From positions 1 to 22,746 of the forward strand of contig JAAOMT010000368.1 of the NCBI GenBank assembly GCA_016748015.1: a stretch of 22,746 nt of DNA. Direction: 5' to 3'. Below are positions 1-22,746 of the stretch, in pieces. A program made the position numbers and the translations under genes. Under the pieces are notes generated by a model. It did no database searches and was not told where the DNA came from. It saw only the letters and a list, made by a program, of their open reading frames with translations. The first letter of the stretch is position 1; each line of letters begins with the position of its first letter. Source of the stretch: Geosiphon pyriformis uo1 (Eukaryota > Fungi > Glomeromycota).

Positions 1-684
1 AACTTTCCCGCCTCCTCAGCCAATATTTTGAATTCTTCAGGCGTCCAATCCCCAATTTTTATCCCTGGTGCCAAATAGCAAATATAGTGGTTTCGTATGG
101 CCACAGGAGACCTTTGAAGAATATGACTTATTTTTTTCCATTTTTGACCATATGTCTGAACTAAATTTTGCAGTTGTTCATTTTCATTTTTAGTCCATGG
201 GCCACGTTTTGGTTCGCTTAAAACACTGTGATACCGACTCTTTAAACCCTCAACACTTCTTTTGGGGAAACAGCCAGTTAAAAATATAGATTTCCAATTA
301 ATTTTACCATAGATTAAATATTTCTTGGCAGCCAATTGTAGCTCCTCATCCTCTTTAAGTGTCCATTTCTGCGCCTTTCTGGTTAATCTAACATCAACAA
401 TACTTTCGCCAGTGCTTAAGCTATAAAATTTACTTTCCAGAGCTGGGATTGTTCTTTTTTGAAAATATTTCTGAGAAATCGGCTTCCAATTTGAACCGTT
501 CTTCTTTTGACACTCAATGAGCATTTTTTTTCTTCCAAAGTCCAGGATCTTAGCCCAGAAATTTTATGACCACATTGGCTGGTAACTATCGGCTAATTTA
601 TAAGTGAATAAGAGAATTTTTCCATTTATTGAATGCGGATTATTTGCAGTAGCTTACCTCCTCTTTACTTAAATTCAGTTTCAT
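1..684 (-). pseudogene. Multi-Myb-repeat gene copy A, 3'-truncated by the window edge and frameshifted (exon 1 684-658, intron 657-593, exon 2 592-<1)
   Basis: Same sequence as the open copy at 22062, but the A-run in GAA GAA AAA AAA ATG is one base short (524-531). This shifts the frame to a TAA at 418-416. There is also a TAC>AAC change at 500. The TATA-like element kept upstream of copies B and D is missing. A homopolymer sequencing error cannot be excluded. Confidence 0.7.
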
Positions 685-758
685 TAAATTTGATCAAATA
701 CAAATGGTAAAACCTGTGGTATAATTAGAACGTAATTTGATCGTGACTTGCATAGTTT
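1..758. repeat. Left arm of a ~760-bp inverted repeat bracketing the whole window (partner 21988-22746)
   Basis: Compared by eye, 1-693 is the reverse complement of 22053-22746 apart from one substitution (500 vs 22247) and a 1-nt homopolymer indel (T8 at 524-531 vs A9). There are five further mismatches in 694-758 (694, 697, 699, 706, 750), and similarity stops after 758. Confidence 0.97.
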
Positions 759-3925: not shown

Positions 3926-5121
3926 CCTTAGCAATCAGATTTCGACGCAAACGATAATGCCAGTAAAACATTTTTTGAAATCTTTTAATCTTATGATTCT
4001 TCGTGTCTGACAGCTCATACGGTTGTATGATGATTAAATCAAACTCGCGAGTAAAAAATAGGATCGCTTTTCTGTGGATTTTATTCTGCAGACGCACAAT
4101 CTTTCGTTGTACGAGACTGCTTTACCGAGTCGCAGGTGTTACGGATGAAAAATTGTTATTTATAATTGAGAATTGCTCCACTAACTGCTAAACAATACCA
4201 AAGCTTCTGCTATTTTTGAAGAATTATTTTGAACTTTACTCATCATGGAGTTTAATTACTAAACTTCCTTTTGGGATAATTAGGCAAAAAGTTTTATTAT
4301 AGTTTAATAAGGGTTTTTTGATTGGCAAGTATTTTTATAGCGATATAAAGGTATAAAAAGAATTTAAAATTTATACTATCAAATCGATTATTTTAGAATT
4401 TCAAAGATAATAATAATATTTTTATAAAAATTTTGCATTCTCAGAAAAGCAAAATAGAACAATAGTAAATTGCATCAAATAATTAAAATTAGGCTGAAAT
4501 TTCAGAAATAAGTTAAGAATTATATTTTGAGATGAATTCATTATTAAATTTATGCATATTAAAATTCGAAACGAATTTTTTGAAAACATAATTTTATTTA
4601 ATCAAAATGCAGAGCTTGAGAATCTGTTCCAAATTTAATGTTTTGGGATTTTACAATTTAAGGTGTGATTTATTTGAATGGTTTTTTCAAAATTTAACTT
4701 TAAAAAATCTTTTAATTCAATTAGTCAAAAAAAAATTTTGGATATTCATTTTGAAAAGGGCTAAGAATAATAAACCACATGACACTTTTTAAAATATAAA
4801 ATTTGATGCTAATAAAAACTCTGTAACTTTTAGACATTGAGAATTTGTAGGCGAAGTAAGATTTAAAACTTAATATTCATTCGCTGGTAAAAATAAGTCA
4901 CTTATAACTGCTGTTCTATTTTTATTCTTGTTTCCAAAATAAGAGCCCAAATGCGACAAGTTTATATCTATCATTTAAGATTTATTTTGTTGCCCATTTT
5001 TTATTAAGAAAGAGATGCTTTATCTTTCATCTCGACTCTTCTATCCAAATTTAAATCTATCTGATCTCCATTATAAAAAATGTGAATCAAAGCCAAAAAA
5101 AGCTCATATTTTATAATAATT

Positions 5122-6062
5122 TCAACTTGTTTTCTTTAGCATCTTTTCATTACATTGTTTGGGACTTCTTGTACTTACAGCCTCCGAAACCTTTTGAAAA
5201 TTTTTACCAAATTTTTTGATTGCTTCATTTAAGGTATGTATTTCTATATCATTCCATTTTCCACTATTGAAATTCCTTTGAACTTTTGGGGAATTATAAT
5301 AATGGCTTTTAATATCCTTCAAAGGTCGCCCGGGTATTAATTGCTGGATTTCTTCCCAATTTTCGTTGAACTTTCCCGCCTCCTCAGCCAATATTTTGAA
5401 TTCTTCAGGCGTCCAATCCCCAATTTTACTTCCTGGTGCCAAATAGTGGATATAGTGGTCTCGTATGAACGTAGGAGGTCTTTGAAGAATATGACTTATT
5501 TTTGTCCATTTTTTGCCATGTGTCTGAACTAAATCGCGCAGTTGTTCATCTTCACTTTTAGTCCATGGGCCACGTTTTGGTTTCGCCAAAGATTCGTGAT
5601 ATCGACTCGCTAAACTTCTAGCACTTCTTTTGGGGAAAGAGCCAGCTAAAAATATAGATTTCCAATTGATTTTGCCATGGATTAAATATTTCTTGGCAGC
5701 CAATTGTAGCTCCTCATCCTCTTTAAGTGTCCATTTCTGCACCTTTCTGGTTAATCTATCATCAATAATACTTTCGCCAGTGCTTAAGCAATAAAATTTA
5801 ATTTGGATAGCTTTGATCGTTCTTGATTGAAAATATTTCTGAGAAATCAGCTTCCAATTTGAACCGTACTTCTTTTGTAGCTCAATAAGGGTTTGTTTTT
5901 CTTCCGAAGTCCAGTTCCGACGATATTTTAGACCAGGAATCTTATGATCCTTTTGGCTAGTAACCATAAGCTAATTCATAGGTGAATAAGAAAACTTTTC
6001 TATATATTGAATGCGGATTATTTGAAGTAGTTTACCTCCTTTTTTTTTAAATTCAGTTTCAT
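5122..6062 (-). CDS. Five-repeat Myb/SANT DNA-binding protein, copy B (about 291 aa; exon 1 6062-6036, intron 6035-5971, exon 2 5970-5122)
   Basis: Five Myb repeats starting WTSEEK, WTLKED, WTKSED, WTPEEF and WNDIEI, with spaced Trp/aromatic residues. An upstream mini-exon MKLNLKKKE is joined in phase 0 by a 65-nt GTAAAC...TAG intron conserved in the paralogs. Confidence 0.93.
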
Positions 6063-6187
6063 TAAATTTGACCATACACAAATTGTAAAACCTGTGGTAT
6101 AATTAGAACGCAATTTGATCGTAGCTTTCATAGTTTGTGATTGAAAAAAAATAAGTGATAAACAAATGTTTCAGTTGCAAAATTCTT

Positions 6188-6197
6188 TATTTATATA
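6188..6197 (-). promoter_or_regulatory. Putative TATA box (TATATAAATA) of Myb copy B
   Basis: About 130 nt upstream of the ATG and conserved at the equivalent position upstream of copy D (21927-21936), within otherwise diverged flank. Confidence 0.5.
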
Positions 6198-7024
6198 GAT
6201 GACCAAAGTGTCGATCAAGCTAGAAGGTTACGCAAGACAAACTAAAAAGTCTAAATCATTCAAGTTTATCCTATTGAATATGATTGTTGTAACTTATTTA
6301 TATTGGAAAATTAGTAAAAAGTTTTACAATTTAATTTTAGCACAATAAATAAAAATTCTAATAAAATACAATAGATAAACAGTTGAAATCAAAAATTTTT
6401 GGGAAAGAGCTAATATAATCATAAAAATTTCTTCAAGAACAAAGACCTGTAGTAATATTATTTTCTAATTTACAATATATTTCAAGAGGTAATATAAATT
6501 TTTCGTGAATTATCATACTTTGTAACAAGTAAGAAAATTTCAAACCATTGCTTACTATAGTTGAAATACTTCCACCCACCAAAAAGTTCGAGTCAAAGCC
6601 ATACTTATGTTTAAATTCTATTAATGTTCTAAAGCTATATTACATAGATTTATTTATGAAAATTTCATTGATTTATTGCAGAAGAAAATGATTTAAAAAT
6701 AAATGAATTGTATATCATTAATCAATAATGGATTAATAACTAAGTTGAGTCTTTGACACTTTTGCTGAGTATAAATATTTTAAACTATTCATTGGAATGC
6801 AATTTTAATAAGTAAGGTTTATATGAGCGGCTTTATTTTGAAATGAAAAGTTGTAAATTGATTTCTTAGTAGTAGGTAAAGCCTAATTAATTTTTTTGAT
6901 TTAGACTGGTTGGCATTAATATTTTTTATATTTATATTTTATGTATTGCAAAAGCCAGTGGCTTTTATAACTATAATTTTGTCTTTTGATATACGGATAC
7001 TTTTTAAAGTCTTGCAATGAATTT

Positions 7025-9891: not shown

Positions 9892-10431
9892 TTACCAATC
9901 CATCAATCCAACATATCCAGCTTTCAGTTTCTCATCAATCAACCTTTGTACAAATTCTTGTGCCCTTAAAGGCGAAGAATGTCTTTGGGTTTGGATAGCT
10001 CGTTCTTTTTGCGTGCCATCCTGCAAAATATTTCCATATCTTATCTGTGTTGTCGTCTCATCTTCAATACAAAATTCCCAAAAGCGTGTGTCTGTTCGAA
10101 GATACCCTGACAACGATGGATGTGATGACGCAATTGTTGTTGCTGATATTATCGAGGATGTGGAAGATACTGATGTCGATAGTGGTGAGTGAGATTGTAT
10201 TTTTTGTTGACTCTGTAGAATTTCTTGTCGTTCTTTTACAAGAATGGCTTCATATTGCGCAAGAAGACCGTCCATTTCGGCGAAATTCTCCGCGGTGAGG
10301 GTATGAGGAGGTAAATTCTTCTCCATTATGAAGGTAGTTTGCCGCGAGAGGGTTTTATTTATTTGACCTGTACCATGCTCTTCAACAATAGTTTCTTTTG
10401 GCTGATAGTTTTGAACAGATGGCATTTTCAT
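9892..10431 (-). CDS. Small protein (179 aa from the first ATG) with a C-terminal WGR-like domain, a helical/coiled segment and a Ser/Thr-rich linker
   Basis: The C-terminus RFWEFCIEDETTTQIRYGNI...QRHSSPLRAQEFVQRLIDEKLKAGY fits the WGR pattern (FW...WG(R)...A...li.eKl.kGY). The ORF is GC-richer than its flanks. The ORF track starts at a non-ATG codon; the first ATG is at 10431. TATAAATA lies on the minus strand at 10545-10538. Confidence 0.85.
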   Translation of the reverse strand: MKMPSVQNYQPKETIVEEHGTGQINKTLSRQTTFIMEKNLPPHTLTAENFAEMDGLLAQYEAILVKERQEILQSQQKIQSHSPLSTSVSSTSSIISATTIASSHPSLSGYLRTDTRFWEFCIEDETTTQIRYGNILQDGTQKERAIQTQRHSSPLRAQEFVQRLIDEKLKAGYVGLMDW

Positions 10432-10489
10432 TTGTGATTTTTCAAGGTGACGGCAAATATAAGTTGAGAAGTAAGCAAGCAAAGCGATT

Positions 10490-14081: not shown

Positions 14082-15665
14082 TTAATTCCTAGGGCTTTCT
14101 CCATAAACTTTAACTTTAATTTTTTTAATCAGATTATAGTCAATAATCAAATCTAAATGTTCTTCACCATCACATTCACAATAAGAAATTTCTGGTCGTA
14201 TGAAATCATTCATAATATTTAAGAAATATTTCAAAGTTTCATAATCAAAATTTATCGAAATCTCTAAATGTAAAAAATCTAAATTTTTTAATAGTTTTTG
14301 ATGAATTTTACAAAGATCAATTAATTGATTGAGATGTAACATGTAGGGTAAACTCGCAGAAGAATCATAAAGAATTAATTCTTTTAAATTTGGACATGAA
14401 ATTAGCAGGTTGTGGATGGATGCTATGGTTTCTCGACTTATATGACAATATAGTTTTTCAAGATTAGGGCAATTTTCGGCTATAATCCAAAGAATTTGAT
14501 TAGAATTGTTTAAAGATTTAGTCACAGTGCCGCCGATTATGATTGTTTTCAATTCGGTATTTGAATGTCGGATCATATCGATTACTATATCCTCTGATAT
14601 TACCGTTGAAATATTTAATTTCTTCAATTTTATAATTTTCATGGAAATAAATGAATGACCCCATTGAGGATAGGGCTCTCCATCACAATCAAAAATATGA
14701 AATTCTTTAAGTTTTTTACATTCAGATAAGCTGGTAAGACAAGACCAACCCAAAGTTGAGATACGGGTAATTGATAAACGACAAAATGTTTTTGATTGAG
14801 TTTTTAATGCTTGACAAATAGAATTCATTATTGTAGAGTCATCTTTCCAATTCCCTAGATCAAGTTCCTGAAGCCCCTTTTGTGATTCAATCAATTTGAT
14901 TAAGATAGGAAGTTGAATTTTTTGGTGATTGGTTGAAAAATTATGGACCAAGTTTCGATCTAAAGGTTGCCAAATTTTTATTTTTTTCAGATTACAAGTT
15001 GCCGATGCGAGTCGTAATAAGAAAAAGTTTGGATTGCGGAATTTTGTTATGGTTAAAATTTTTATTGAAGTTGCCCGATTAAGTAACATTTTAAATAGAA
15101 TTTGAGTGATTAAATTTTCACAATTTTCTCGATATTTTTGAGAATCGGTAACGTATTTTGCTCCATTTTTTGGTGTGAAGATGCTGGTAGTGAGTTGATT
15201 GATTTTTGATGAACAGCGGAGACTATAAAAAATTGATTTTCTCTTCCTTATTGCCTTAACCCTCGACAAAGCAAACCAACAATTAACCCCGTCAACAAGT
15301 TGTTCAATATCAATAGTTTGAGAAAAGGAAGCGTAATCAATGTTTATAGTTCTCCTTATTTTTGACAGTATAATTCCTCCTTCCTTTAAACTTTTTCTGG
15401 AATCTTTATCCAATATTGAAAGGTAAGTCTCAATTAGGATGGGAGCTTTTTGACGCCAAACTTGTACCGATTCGGTGGTATCAGTTCGTTTTTCCAATAA
15501 GAGATTGAATGGGTTTTGCCAAAGAGTTTGGGTGGCGGGAAAGTTCCAACTTCGATTTATTAAGAGACAATTATATAGGGTAAAGAGATCTGTTGTTTGG
15601 ATTGAGTTGATAATATGCTGGATACATTCTAATGGGAGTGTGTTTGCTGGTGCTAGCGATGTCAT
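14082..15665 (-). CDS. F-box-like / RNI-type leucine-rich-repeat protein (527 aa, single exon)
   Basis: N-terminal LPLECIQHII...LYNCLLINRSW...LWQNPF F-box-like motif typical of the expanded arbuscular mycorrhizal fungal family. C-terminal LRR-like units (LQELDL, CKKLKEFHI, CPNLEKLY, CPNLKELIL). Confidence 0.9.
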   Translation of the reverse strand: MTSLAPANTLPLECIQHIINSIQTTDLFTLYNCLLINRSWNFPATQTLWQNPFNLLLEKRTDTTESVQVWRQKAPILIETYLSILDKDSRKSLKEGGIILSKIRRTINIDYASFSQTIDIEQLVDGVNCWFALSRVKAIRKRKSIFYSLRCSSKINQLTTSIFTPKNGAKYVTDSQKYRENCENLITQILFKMLLNRATSIKILTITKFRNPNFFLLRLASATCNLKKIKIWQPLDRNLVHNFSTNHQKIQLPILIKLIESQKGLQELDLGNWKDDSTIMNSICQALKTQSKTFCRLSITRISTLGWSCLTSLSECKKLKEFHIFDCDGEPYPQWGHSFISMKIIKLKKLNISTVISEDIVIDMIRHSNTELKTIIIGGTVTKSLNNSNQILWIIAENCPNLEKLYCHISRETIASIHNLLISCPNLKELILYDSSASLPYMLHLNQLIDLCKIHQKLLKNLDFLHLEISINFDYETLKYFLNIMNDFIRPEISYCECDGEEHLDLIIDYNLIKKIKVKVYGESPRN

Positions 15666-17799: not shown

Positions 17800-18790
17800 T
17801 CAATCTACCTTCAAAGATTTTAATTTGGGCATTTCCAAACGATATTTTCTCGGAATTCTTGTAACAATTACCTTTGAAACATTGACCCAATTTTTGCCAT
17901 GTTCTTTAATTGCTTTAATTAAGGCCTCTGCCTCTATTAAATGCCTTATTCCGGTTTTAAAACGGTTTCGAGCTTTTGGTGAATTGCGAGAATTTTGTCG
18001 GATGCGTCGCAACGACCGCCCTGGTAGACATTTCTGAATTTTTTCCCGATCTGGTCCAAATTCTTCTATGGCTTTGACTAATTTTTCAAACTCCTCGGCT
18101 TTCCAACGGCTTGTTTGAACCCCGTGGGTTAAATATTCACTATACCGTCTTGATATATTCCTAGGAGCTCTTTGTAGAAGATGACTGATTCTCTGCCATT
18201 GCTGGCCATATTGTTGAATCAGATTTAGCAATTCTTTATCTTCCTCCTTTGTCCATAATCCCTGTTTTTGGTATTTGTTTACATAGTAATAACGCTTACG
18301 CAAATCTCTAGCAGCTTTTTGAGAAAACTTGCCCTTCGATAATATGGCCTTCCTGTCAATTTTTTGTATGGTCAAATATTTTTCTACCGCAGATTTCAGC
18401 TCTCTATCTTCTTTTTTTGTCGATTTGATGGTATTTCGATTAAATTTTTCATCAGAAGCTGCGCCACTTTTTTGTATTTGGGACCATTGCTGAAATATGG
18501 CTCCACTCGTCCGTGAAGGAAAATATTTTTCGGCCAAAAGCTCCCAATCTGAGCCATGCTTTTTATGAACCGCTATTAATTCTTTCTTTTCGTCCAGGCT
18601 CCATCTCTGATAAGATCTTAAATGAGAAATCTTTTTTTGTATACATTCAGCAATCTTAAAAGTAGTTTTTTCACATATTAGATTATTCTAGGAGGATCAA
18701 GATATATGATCCAGTGAAAATTTTTCGCTAGCATAAATAGGGATCTTAAAGTTAATTTACCAAAGCTGGGAATCCCAATTTCATTTTCAT
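17800..18790 (-). CDS. Divergent five-repeat Myb/SANT protein, copy C (about 294 aa; exon 1 18790-18761, intron 18760-18655, exon 2 18654-17800)
   Basis: The frame stays open upstream of the track's TTG start (IAECIQKKISHLRSYQRWSLDEKKELIAVHKKHGSDWELL), completing repeat 1. Mini-exon MKMKLGFPAL is followed by a phase-0 GTAAAT...CTAAT...AAG intron of 106 nt at a position equivalent to that in the paralogs. It is colinear with copy B over all five repeats. Confidence 0.85.
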
Positions 18791-21987: not shown

Positions 21988-22746
21988 AAACTATGAAAGT
22001 CACGATCAAATTACGTTCTAATTATACCACAGGTTTTACAATTTGTGTATGGTCAAATTTAATGAAACTGAATTTAAGTAAAGAGGAGGTAAGCTACTGC
22101 AAATAATCCGCATTCAATAAATGGAAAAATTCTCTTATTCACTTATAAATTAGCCGATAGTTACCAGCCAATGTGGTCATAAAATTTCTGGGCTAAGATC
22201 CTGGACTTTGGAAGAAAAAAAAATGCTCATTGAGTGTCAAAAGAAGTACGGTTCAAATTGGAAGCCGATTTCTCAGAAATATTTTCAAAAAAGAACAATC
22301 CCAGCTCTGGAAAGTAAATTTTATAGCTTAAGCACTGGCGAAAGTATTGTTGATGTTAGATTAACCAGAAAGGCGCAGAAATGGACACTTAAAGAGGATG
22401 AGGAGCTACAATTGGCTGCCAAGAAATATTTAATCTATGGTAAAATTAATTGGAAATCTATATTTTTAACTGGCTGTTTCCCCAAAAGAAGTGTTGAGGG
22501 TTTAAAGAGTCGGTATCACAGTGTTTTAAGCGAACCAAAACGTGGCCCATGGACTAAAAATGAAAATGAACAACTGCAAAATTTAGTTCAGACATATGGT
22601 CAAAAATGGAAAAAAATAAGTCATATTCTTCAAAGGTCTCCTGTGGCCATACGAAACCACTATATTTGCTATTTGGCACCAGGGATAAAAATTGGGGATT
22701 GGACGCCTGAAGAATTCAAAATATTGGCTGAGGAGGCGGGAAAGTT
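21988..22746. repeat. Right arm of the inverted repeat (partner 1-758); its upstream similarity to the middle Myb copy extends further (about 21906 vs 6218)
   Basis: The window ends ...gaggaggcgggaaagtt, the reverse complement of its first bases aactttcccgcctcctc. 21906-22060 also aligns in reverse complement with about 6064-6218. Confidence 0.97.
22062..22746 (+). CDS. Multi-Myb-repeat protein, copy D, open frame running off the window (exon 1 22062-22088, intron 22089-22153, exon 2 22154->22746)
   Basis: MKLNLSKEE | GTAAGC...TAG | PIVTSQCGHKISGLRSWTLEEKKMLIECQKKYGSNWKPISQKYFQKRTIPALESKFYS...GDWTPEEFKILAEEAGK, with no stops. It has an in-frame 9-nt deletion relative to copy B. It is absent from the ORF track because no stop codon falls inside the window. 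Confidence 0.9.

Follow-up and report, generated by a model that had tools for sequence, protein, structure and literature searches.

Clusters of C2H2 zinc-finger genes are well known for rapid adaptive change at their DNA-contacting residues, and this change has been tied to transposon control and to recombination hotspots. Our search of the literature found nothing comparable for Myb domains, whose key contacts are usually treated as conserved. In the MYB proteins of animals and plants, the key contacts K128, K182 and N183 are conserved (PMC2673439). Here we describe a family of proteins with five Myb repeats from the glomeromycotan fungus Geosiphon pyriformis. Four members are encoded on a complete contig of 22,746 base pairs (bp; C310), which is referred to as the window. 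Our data demonstrate that this family is clustered and turns over. Its scaffold evolves under purifying selection and the equivalents of base-contacting residues in all five recognition helices under positive selection, against a background of gene conversion. At the contact-equivalent residues the rate of change is about threefold that of silent sites, much as in the rapidly evolving animal zinc-finger families. As an explanation of the locus, a five-Myb-repeat family in which positive selection acts on the DNA-facing residues of the third helix of each repeat (the recognition helix, helix 3), with a conserved scaffold and gene conversion, appears to us quite probable. The literature search returned nothing on this family and, surveys of plant R2R3-MYB proteins aside, nothing on positively selected Myb recognition helices.

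By tblastn with copy B as query, four family members were found in the window:

3..589, minus strand: copy A, broken off at residue 199 where the contig starts, with one frameshift
5122..5967, minus strand: copy B, intact Myb open reading frame (ORF) from an internal Met
17800..18633, minus strand: copy C, a distant member with an open frame
22157..22744, plus strand: copy D, broken off at residue 199 where the contig ends

Copy D shares 77–78% protein identity with copy B. Copies A and D lie in inverted orientation and are 99.1% identical over 759 bp (6 mismatches and 1 gap; blastn of the contig ends). As near-identical inverted copies they represent one data point, and A is therefore not independent. 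A preliminary description of this DNA had also pointed to the differing recognition helices of copy C. The strings quoted for C do exist, but the comparison carries no weight: C shares no more than 39% identity with B, and its best match elsewhere in the genome reaches 42%, so that this singleton lineage without a close paralog is uninformative on where divergence concentrates, and it was rejected as a third comparison. Four conserved tryptophans of C, in repeats 2, 4 and 5, are replaced by R or S while the frame is open; C may be decaying or have an altered fold.

The genome contains 85 six-frame matches to B, which cluster on C310, C507, C520, C669, C596 and C788, with others scattered. In-frame stops occur in 12 of the 36 matches that cover at least 200 residues. 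Upstream, homology between copies extends about 260 bp beyond the main exon, and downstream it ends with the stop codon; comparison of the copies and their flanks revealed no second shared ORF. Since homology is limited to the gene and about 260 bp upstream of it, the duplicated unit is the gene itself and not a larger mobile element. A Myb gene borne by a transposon (e.g., of the Harbinger type) was rejected on the same ground. For the selection analyses, B, eight other intact copies from C507, C520 and C788 (76–82% protein identity; four contigs in all) and the truncated D were taken as clade 1, and six copies from C669 that are about 52% identical to B as clade 2. The repeats of clade 1 align without gaps.

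All protein analyses were based on the sequence of exon 2 (see below); exon 1, from the conserved ATG, adds only nine residues. The Pfam profile Myb_DNA-binding (PF00249) matches five stretches of copy B (E = 1e-47, 160 bits versus a cut-off of 24.4), and the Pfam scan of B revealed only Myb domains, with no effector or repressor domain. The core aromatic and hydrophobic residues of the five repeats are W19/W38/F58, W79/W102/Y123, W135/W154/Y172, W185/W204/Y223 and W238/F257/M276. Nine of ten tryptophan positions (19, 38, 79, 102, 135, 154, 185, 204 and 238) are invariant or nearly so among 17 family members. The AlphaFold model of B (mean predicted local distance difference test score, pLDDT, of 80) has three helices in each repeat, and Foldseek gave TM-scores of 0.62–0.73 versus DNA complexes of c-Myb and Trichomonas Myb. 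The isoelectric point (pI) is 9.5–10.1 in all paralogs. Homology, the basic pI and the positions of the selected sites described below together suggest sequence-specific DNA binding via helix 3.

The limits of the helices were derived by DSSP from the AlphaFold model of B. In c-Myb, base contacts are made by K128, E132 and N136 in R2 and by N179, K182, N183, N186 and S187 in R3 (PMC3203581, PMC2673439). Relative to the third tryptophan of a repeat, these contacts fall at offsets −6, −3, −2, +1 and +2, which defined the contact positions. When B is aligned with 1H88 by phmmer, its repeats 2–4 fall on R1–R3 of c-Myb. Because the geometry of the recognition helix is the same as in c-Myb, each contact position has a direct counterpart. 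The contact set was fixed before testing by applying these offsets to F58, Y123, Y172, Y223 and M276, which gave 23 codons within the 276 analysed. The recognition helices of copy B and the sites with evidence of selection (posteriors of models M2a and M8, see below) are as follows:

5782..5817, minus strand: repeat 1, residues 51–62, selected K52 (−6) and Q55 (−3)
5587..5622, minus strand: repeat 2, residues 116–127, selected R117 (−6), A120 (−3) and E125 (+2), with A128 just past the helix
5440..5475, minus strand: repeat 3, residues 165–176, selected T166, F167, D170 and H174
5293..5322, minus strand: repeat 4, residues 216–225, selected K217 (= c-Myb N179) and S221 (= N183)
5128..5163, minus strand: repeat 5, residues 269–280, selected K270 (−6) and N273 (−3)

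To quantify selection we analysed the ten clade 1 paralogs over 276 codons. Our own codon-likelihood code matched the likelihood of IQ-TREE under GY+F3X4 to the third decimal (−3721.219). Under M0 the ratio of nonsynonymous to synonymous rates (ω, or dN/dS) was 0.62. A partition model assigned an ω of 1.39 to helix 3 and 0.46 to the remaining codons (twice the log-likelihood difference, 2ΔlnL, 24.5, p = 7e-7; synonymous-rate ratio 1.11), and helices 1 and 2 were indistinguishable from the rest. For the 23 contact codons ω rose to 3.6, compared to 0.49 elsewhere (2ΔlnL 40, p = 2e-10), and this value was significantly different from 1 (2ΔlnL 17, p = 4e-5; synonymous-rate ratio 0.75). The 31 codons of helix 3 that are not in the contact set had an ω of 0.57, similar to the rest of the protein; the helix-3 signal is therefore the signal of the DNA-facing side of the helix. 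With a single tree, M2a was favoured over M1a (2ΔlnL 70), with 11% of sites at ω 4.7. With segment-specific trees (see below), a posterior above 0.8 was reached by 12 of the 23 contact codons versus 11 of the 253 others (p = 4e-9). Positive selection on helix 3, as proposed in the preliminary description, thus agrees with these estimates, and dN/dS was neither uniform along the protein nor flat in helix 3.

The selected positions follow the same register in all repeats. At offset −6, five to seven different residues are found in each of the five repeats among the ten copies (mean posterior 0.96). Offsets −3, −2 and +2 are the next most selected, and offsets −9, −8, −4 and 0 are conserved. In the alignment to 1H88, T166, D170 and H174 correspond to c-Myb K128, E132 and N136. 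The key contacts of c-Myb type are not kept: the positions equivalent to T166, K220 and S221 and their counterparts in the other repeats vary, and only K220 of repeat 4, the equivalent of c-Myb K182, is fixed in clade 1. The combination of contact residues is unique to each paralog.

The same concentration is seen in the direct comparison of copies B and D, on which the preliminary description was based. All helix-3 strings it quoted for B, D and C are present in our alignments. The two copies are 87% identical over about 850 bp, and both long identical stretches that it reported are exact. One run of 61 nucleotides (nt) occupies window positions 5680–5740 (segment ending ...EELQLAAKKYLI); the other, given as 59 bp at 5369–5427, proved to be 57 nt at 5371–5427 and runs up to the contig edge, where D ends. 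Amino acid differences between B and D affect 15 of 36 helix-3 codons versus 28 of 159 others (Fisher p = 0.003), in line with the claimed concentration in the recognition helices, and 10 of 15 base-contact-equivalent codons versus 33 of 180 others (p = 1e-4). Clustered multi-nucleotide changes in helix 3 had likewise been noted, and 9 of the 17 multi-nucleotide changes between B and D fall there.

Gene conversion can inflate site-model tests. Since recombination can mislead these models, we repeated the tests with one tree per segment; the trees of the five repeat segments do conflict. With five segment-specific trees, M2a was still favoured over M1a (2ΔlnL 61; ω 4.2 at 13% of sites). The comparison of M7 and M8 suggested in the preliminary description gave a 2ΔlnL of 77 in favour of M8, and M8 was also favoured over M8a (2ΔlnL 60), with about 15% of sites at ω 4. 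Of the 23 sites selected under segment-specific trees, 13 are in helix 3 and 12 belong to the contact set. A pairwise composite likelihood that uses no tree gave an ω of 2.8 for the contact codons (codon bootstrap 1.9–3.9, no replicate at or below 1) versus 0.445 elsewhere. None of 5000 random sets of 23 codons exceeded 1.57, and when the offset pattern was slid along the repeats the maximum was found at the true register, with values of 0.13–0.76 everywhere outside helix 3.

Clade 2 replicates the result of clade 1 in part. M2a was favoured over M1a (p = 1e-6), with ω 5.6 at 7% of sites, and all seven sites with a posterior above 0.8 lie in helix 3, five of them in the contact set. Between L016 and L018, the closest pair (93% identical in DNA), changes affect 11 of 23 contact codons versus 22 of 247 others (p = 9e-6), and none of the changes in the contact codons is synonymous only.

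Two further observations concern the distribution of silent changes and of identity. In clade 1 the synonymous rates of helices 1 and 2 are about 0.5–0.7 of those in the rest, and the exact identity runs between B and D fall in codons 21–45, 81–107 and 137–161, which are helix 1/2 zones of the clade 1 alignment. Gene conversion may homogenise the scaffold while differences between the recognition helices persist.

Several points weigh against positive selection on the DNA-facing residues. The clade 1 paralogs are mosaics (Sawyer-type run test p = 0.002, PHI-type test p = 0.008), and the five fixed segments may leave some breakpoints uncaptured. Neighbouring-base double changes account for 17 of the 56 codons changed between B and D, and codon models that proceed in single steps can take such changes for excess replacement. 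The NG86 count for the contact codons is 1.63, with a bootstrap interval of 0.93–3.05 that touches 1. The mean ω of the contact codons in clade 2 (1.17 versus 0.40, p = 0.024) is not above 1, and the closest pair in clade 1, L006 and L008, shows no enrichment at contact codons. Repeat 4 is acidic overall. The only public sequencing run sharing a few words with B holds a contig of 91% similarity. Compared against positions 4900–6300, it yielded three contig pieces that are 90–95% alike, one of them 468 nt long; these probably derive from the DNA of a paralog or of a related strain and are uninformative on transcription. Ten selected sites outside helix 3 (6, 26, 30, 76, 128, 184, 245, 250, 252 and 255) are unexplained. 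Some of these sit in linkers just before a repeat, and a Trichomonas Myb uses a lysine in the linker just before a repeat for base recognition (PMC3203581).

These points can be arranged into other explanations of the data. The enrichment in helix 3 could be real and the ω above 1 an artefact of conversion mosaics and multi-nucleotide mutations, the contact sites being merely unconstrained with an ω near 1. The significant recombination, the many codons that differ at two or three bases, the NG86 interval that contains 1 and the contact ω of clade 2, indistinguishable from 1 at 1.17, all fit this explanation. We nevertheless regard it as improbable, since segment-specific trees alter little (2ΔlnL 61, ω 4.2) and the pairwise ω of 2.8, which requires no tree, has no bootstrap replicate at or below 1. 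Neither of the two artefacts sees which codons face the DNA, yet the peak is found at the exact register fixed a priori and lies above all 5000 random sets; position −6, with five to seven residues per repeat among ten copies, points in the same direction. It would also be surprising if the variable face of helix 3 bound something other than DNA, whether RNA in the manner of Cdc5/Cef1, histone tails like a SANT domain, or a fast-changing protein partner or antagonist. The selected positions are those that contact bases in c-Myb, and no other surface. The paralogs are strongly basic (pI 9.5–10.1), unlike the acidic SANT domains, and the structures that match best, those of SNAPC4, c-Myb and Reb1, are DNA complexes. 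On the other side, RNA-contacting Cdc5/Cef1 is among the sequence and fold matches, repeat 4 is acidic and helix 1 of repeats 1 and 5 carries selected sites.

We consider it very unlikely that the family is decaying, with the copies being pseudogenes or nearly so and the pattern reflecting a general loss of constraint. Such decay would agree with in-frame stops in about one third of the long matches, the frameshift in copy A, the loss of four conserved tryptophans in copy C and a public run whose related words are probably DNA and not RNA. But nine full-length close copies are open, and these together with D keep promoter, start codon and splice sites. Constraint is evident from an ω of 0.49 outside the contact codons and 0.57 at the helix-3 non-contact codons, and an ω of 3.6 at 23 pre-specified codons is impossible under neutral decay. 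A mutator targeted to the helix-3 segments, by hypermutation or templated diversification instead of selection, we hold to be extremely unlikely. It might produce changes that are clustered and often multi-nucleotide, and helix-3 cassettes that are common to otherwise diverged copies: L005 and L007 are identical across codons 152–175, which include the repeat 3 helix. It should, however, also raise the synonymous rate, which is not elevated in helix 3 (ratios 1.1–1.2) or in the contact codons (0.75), and the helix-3 non-contact codons are conserved (ω 0.57). The 1.1-kb unit contains no reverse transcriptase or template repeat. Local hypermutation was rejected, as synonymous rates are equal in and outside the helices.

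The gene structure of copy B was resolved by comparison with its paralogs and comprises the following features:

5122..5970, minus strand: exon 2, encoding the five Myb repeats, with the stop codon at 5122–5124
5971..6035, minus strand: intron of 65 nt, GT...AG, conserved in all close paralogs (ten upstream regions aligned)
6036..6062, minus strand: exon 1, 27 nt, encoding MKLNLKKKE, from an ATG present in every paralog
6185..6219, minus strand: putative promoter block, with a TATA box (6185–6197) and a doubled TTGATC-like element (6198–6219) just upstream of it

Counted from the internal Met at 5967, B has 281 residues. Its sequence is identical to that of the annotated hypothetical Geosiphon protein G9A89_000662, for which a 314-residue model requires splicing of the 65-nt intron. 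The annotated model begins at an upstream ATG (6131) that is not conserved among the paralogs. The TATA box, exon 1 and the intron are kept in ten aligned loci of the close clade, namely eight of the nine intact paralogs, B and the frameshifted L011. One 15-mer of the exon 1 region of B recurs upstream of A (670–684) and of D (22062–22076). The two TTGATC-like words are 12 bp apart and directly upstream of the TATA box, and the block is also found upstream of nine paralogs; the first word is preceded by TAAC, which is loosely similar to a Myb site. This block could be a common or an auto-regulatory site.

Close to the N-terminus, residues 7–15 of B (window about 5923–5949) form a segment D-[HK]-K-I-x-x-L that precedes repeat 1. 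It is kept across clades that are only 40–50% identical, and I10 is nearly invariant. This segment might serve in partner binding or act as an arm that contacts DNA.

The layout of the contig shows a further feature at its ends:

1..758, no strand: left arm of a terminal inverted duplication, partner 21988–22746, alignment of 759 bp

Both ends carry inverted copies of a Myb fragment that are broken off at the identical residue. Such an arrangement points to an inverted duplication that is large and recent, or to a palindrome at which the assembly broke, and the true locus probably extends beyond the contig. Between the Myb genes, an intact ORF of 527 residues (14082–15665, minus strand) begins with a weak resemblance to an F-box (Pfam E = 0.002). 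The two paralogs nearest to it (25–26% identical) adjoin other Myb clusters, at 28–30 kb of C520 and 294–296 kb of C788. The Myb clusters may have descended from an old duplicated block that also contained the gene of this ORF. Another ORF, of 196 residues (9892–10482, minus strand), lies in the GC-richest part of the contig (38%) and has no Pfam match.

Considering all observations, we propose the following scenario for the five-repeat family. B, A and D are members of a family, much expanded in Geosiphon, whose small and strongly basic proteins have about 291 residues and consist nearly entirely of five Myb repeats. The unit that is duplicated locally, and by which the family grows, measures about 1.1 kb and comprises the promoter, the 27-nt first exon, the intron and the main exon. 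Gene conversion shuffles the copies into mosaics, and about one third of the long copies have decayed. In the intact copies, purifying selection maintains the residues that form the fold. Diversifying selection acts in all five repeats at positions −6, −3, −2 and +2 from the third aromatic residue, the equivalents of c-Myb K128/N179, K182, E132/N183 and N136/S187. Each paralog would then read a distinct long nucleic-acid sequence, and duplication together with conversion could yield new combinations of reading heads. From homology to the c-Myb contacts we infer that the selected changes alter the specificity for the nucleic-acid target, and conversion would move reading heads between copies. 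With no effector domain, the proteins might act by occupying their sites, or by recruiting a partner through the short segment conserved at the N-terminus.

It is tempting, although rather doubtful at present, to regard the family as a fungal, Myb-based counterpart of the KRAB zinc-finger genes that serves as a repertoire for genome defence or management. In that case each protein would carry five independently evolving heads, recombined by conversion, that track transposons, satellite repeats or foreign DNA, and the setting would be a repeat-rich fungus in long-term symbiosis. The preliminary description had likewise raised, as a possibility, an arms race with transposons. If true, no such system would have been described in fungi before, and none built on Myb repeats. 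It would mean that the same evolutionary solution has been reached on a different DNA-reading fold, in an early-diverging fungal lineage whose gene regulation has hardly been studied. The paralogs moreover form a natural set of five-repeat proteins that vary chiefly at defined positions, and so offer ready material for deciphering a Myb recognition code.

Among proteins outside Geosiphon, the nearest named relatives are uncharacterised five-repeat Myb proteins of Ambispora gerdemannii and of Diversispora epigaea and D. eburnea, which are 33–37% identical. They match most or all of the repeat array and are longer (357–457 residues). The Diversispora relative and a long metagenomic relative, P0018, have their best match in SNAPC4. 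SNAPC4 (SNAP190; 7XUR, 7ZWC), the subunit of the snRNA-activating complex that carries Myb repeats, is also close to the Geosiphon family in its collinear array of four to five Myb repeats: residues 75–275 of B align with 310–511 of SNAPC4, and the top whole-length Foldseek match of B is 7XUR_A, SNAPC4 on its promoter element (285 columns). Among solved structures, this array and c-Myb R1R2R3 on DNA are nearest to B in both sequence and fold. SNAPC4 is, however, a protein of about 1,500 residues in the PDB with regions that bind SNAPc subunits, whereas the Geosiphon proteins have 291–314 residues, consist of repeats only and exist in dozens of fast-diverging copies. A SNAPC4 orthologue was rejected on these grounds, namely the short length, the repeats-only build and 85 genome matches versus a single conserved gene. 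With c-Myb and R2R3-MYB proteins the family shares the fold, and B is 33–35% identical to R1R2R3 of c-Myb. It differs from them by its five repeats and by having no activation domain, and the equivalents of K128, K182 and N183 are its most variable positions, except for the fixed K182 equivalent of repeat 4. Since the key contacts are not conserved, a factor of c-Myb type was rejected as well.

In its mode of evolution the family is closest to the KRAB zinc-finger, PRDM9 and ZAD zinc-finger genes. Like these, it forms tandem clusters with birth-and-death turnover and pseudogenes, and like these it is built from small modular DNA-reading units in which selection acts on a few base-contact residues per unit while the scaffold is conserved. 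Unlike the KRAB and PRDM9 systems, the Geosiphon family has no KRAB, SET or other effector domain detectable by Pfam. The KRAB, PRDM9 and ZAD proteins use C2H2 fingers in variable number, whereas the Geosiphon proteins use Myb helix-turn-helix repeats whose number is fixed at five.

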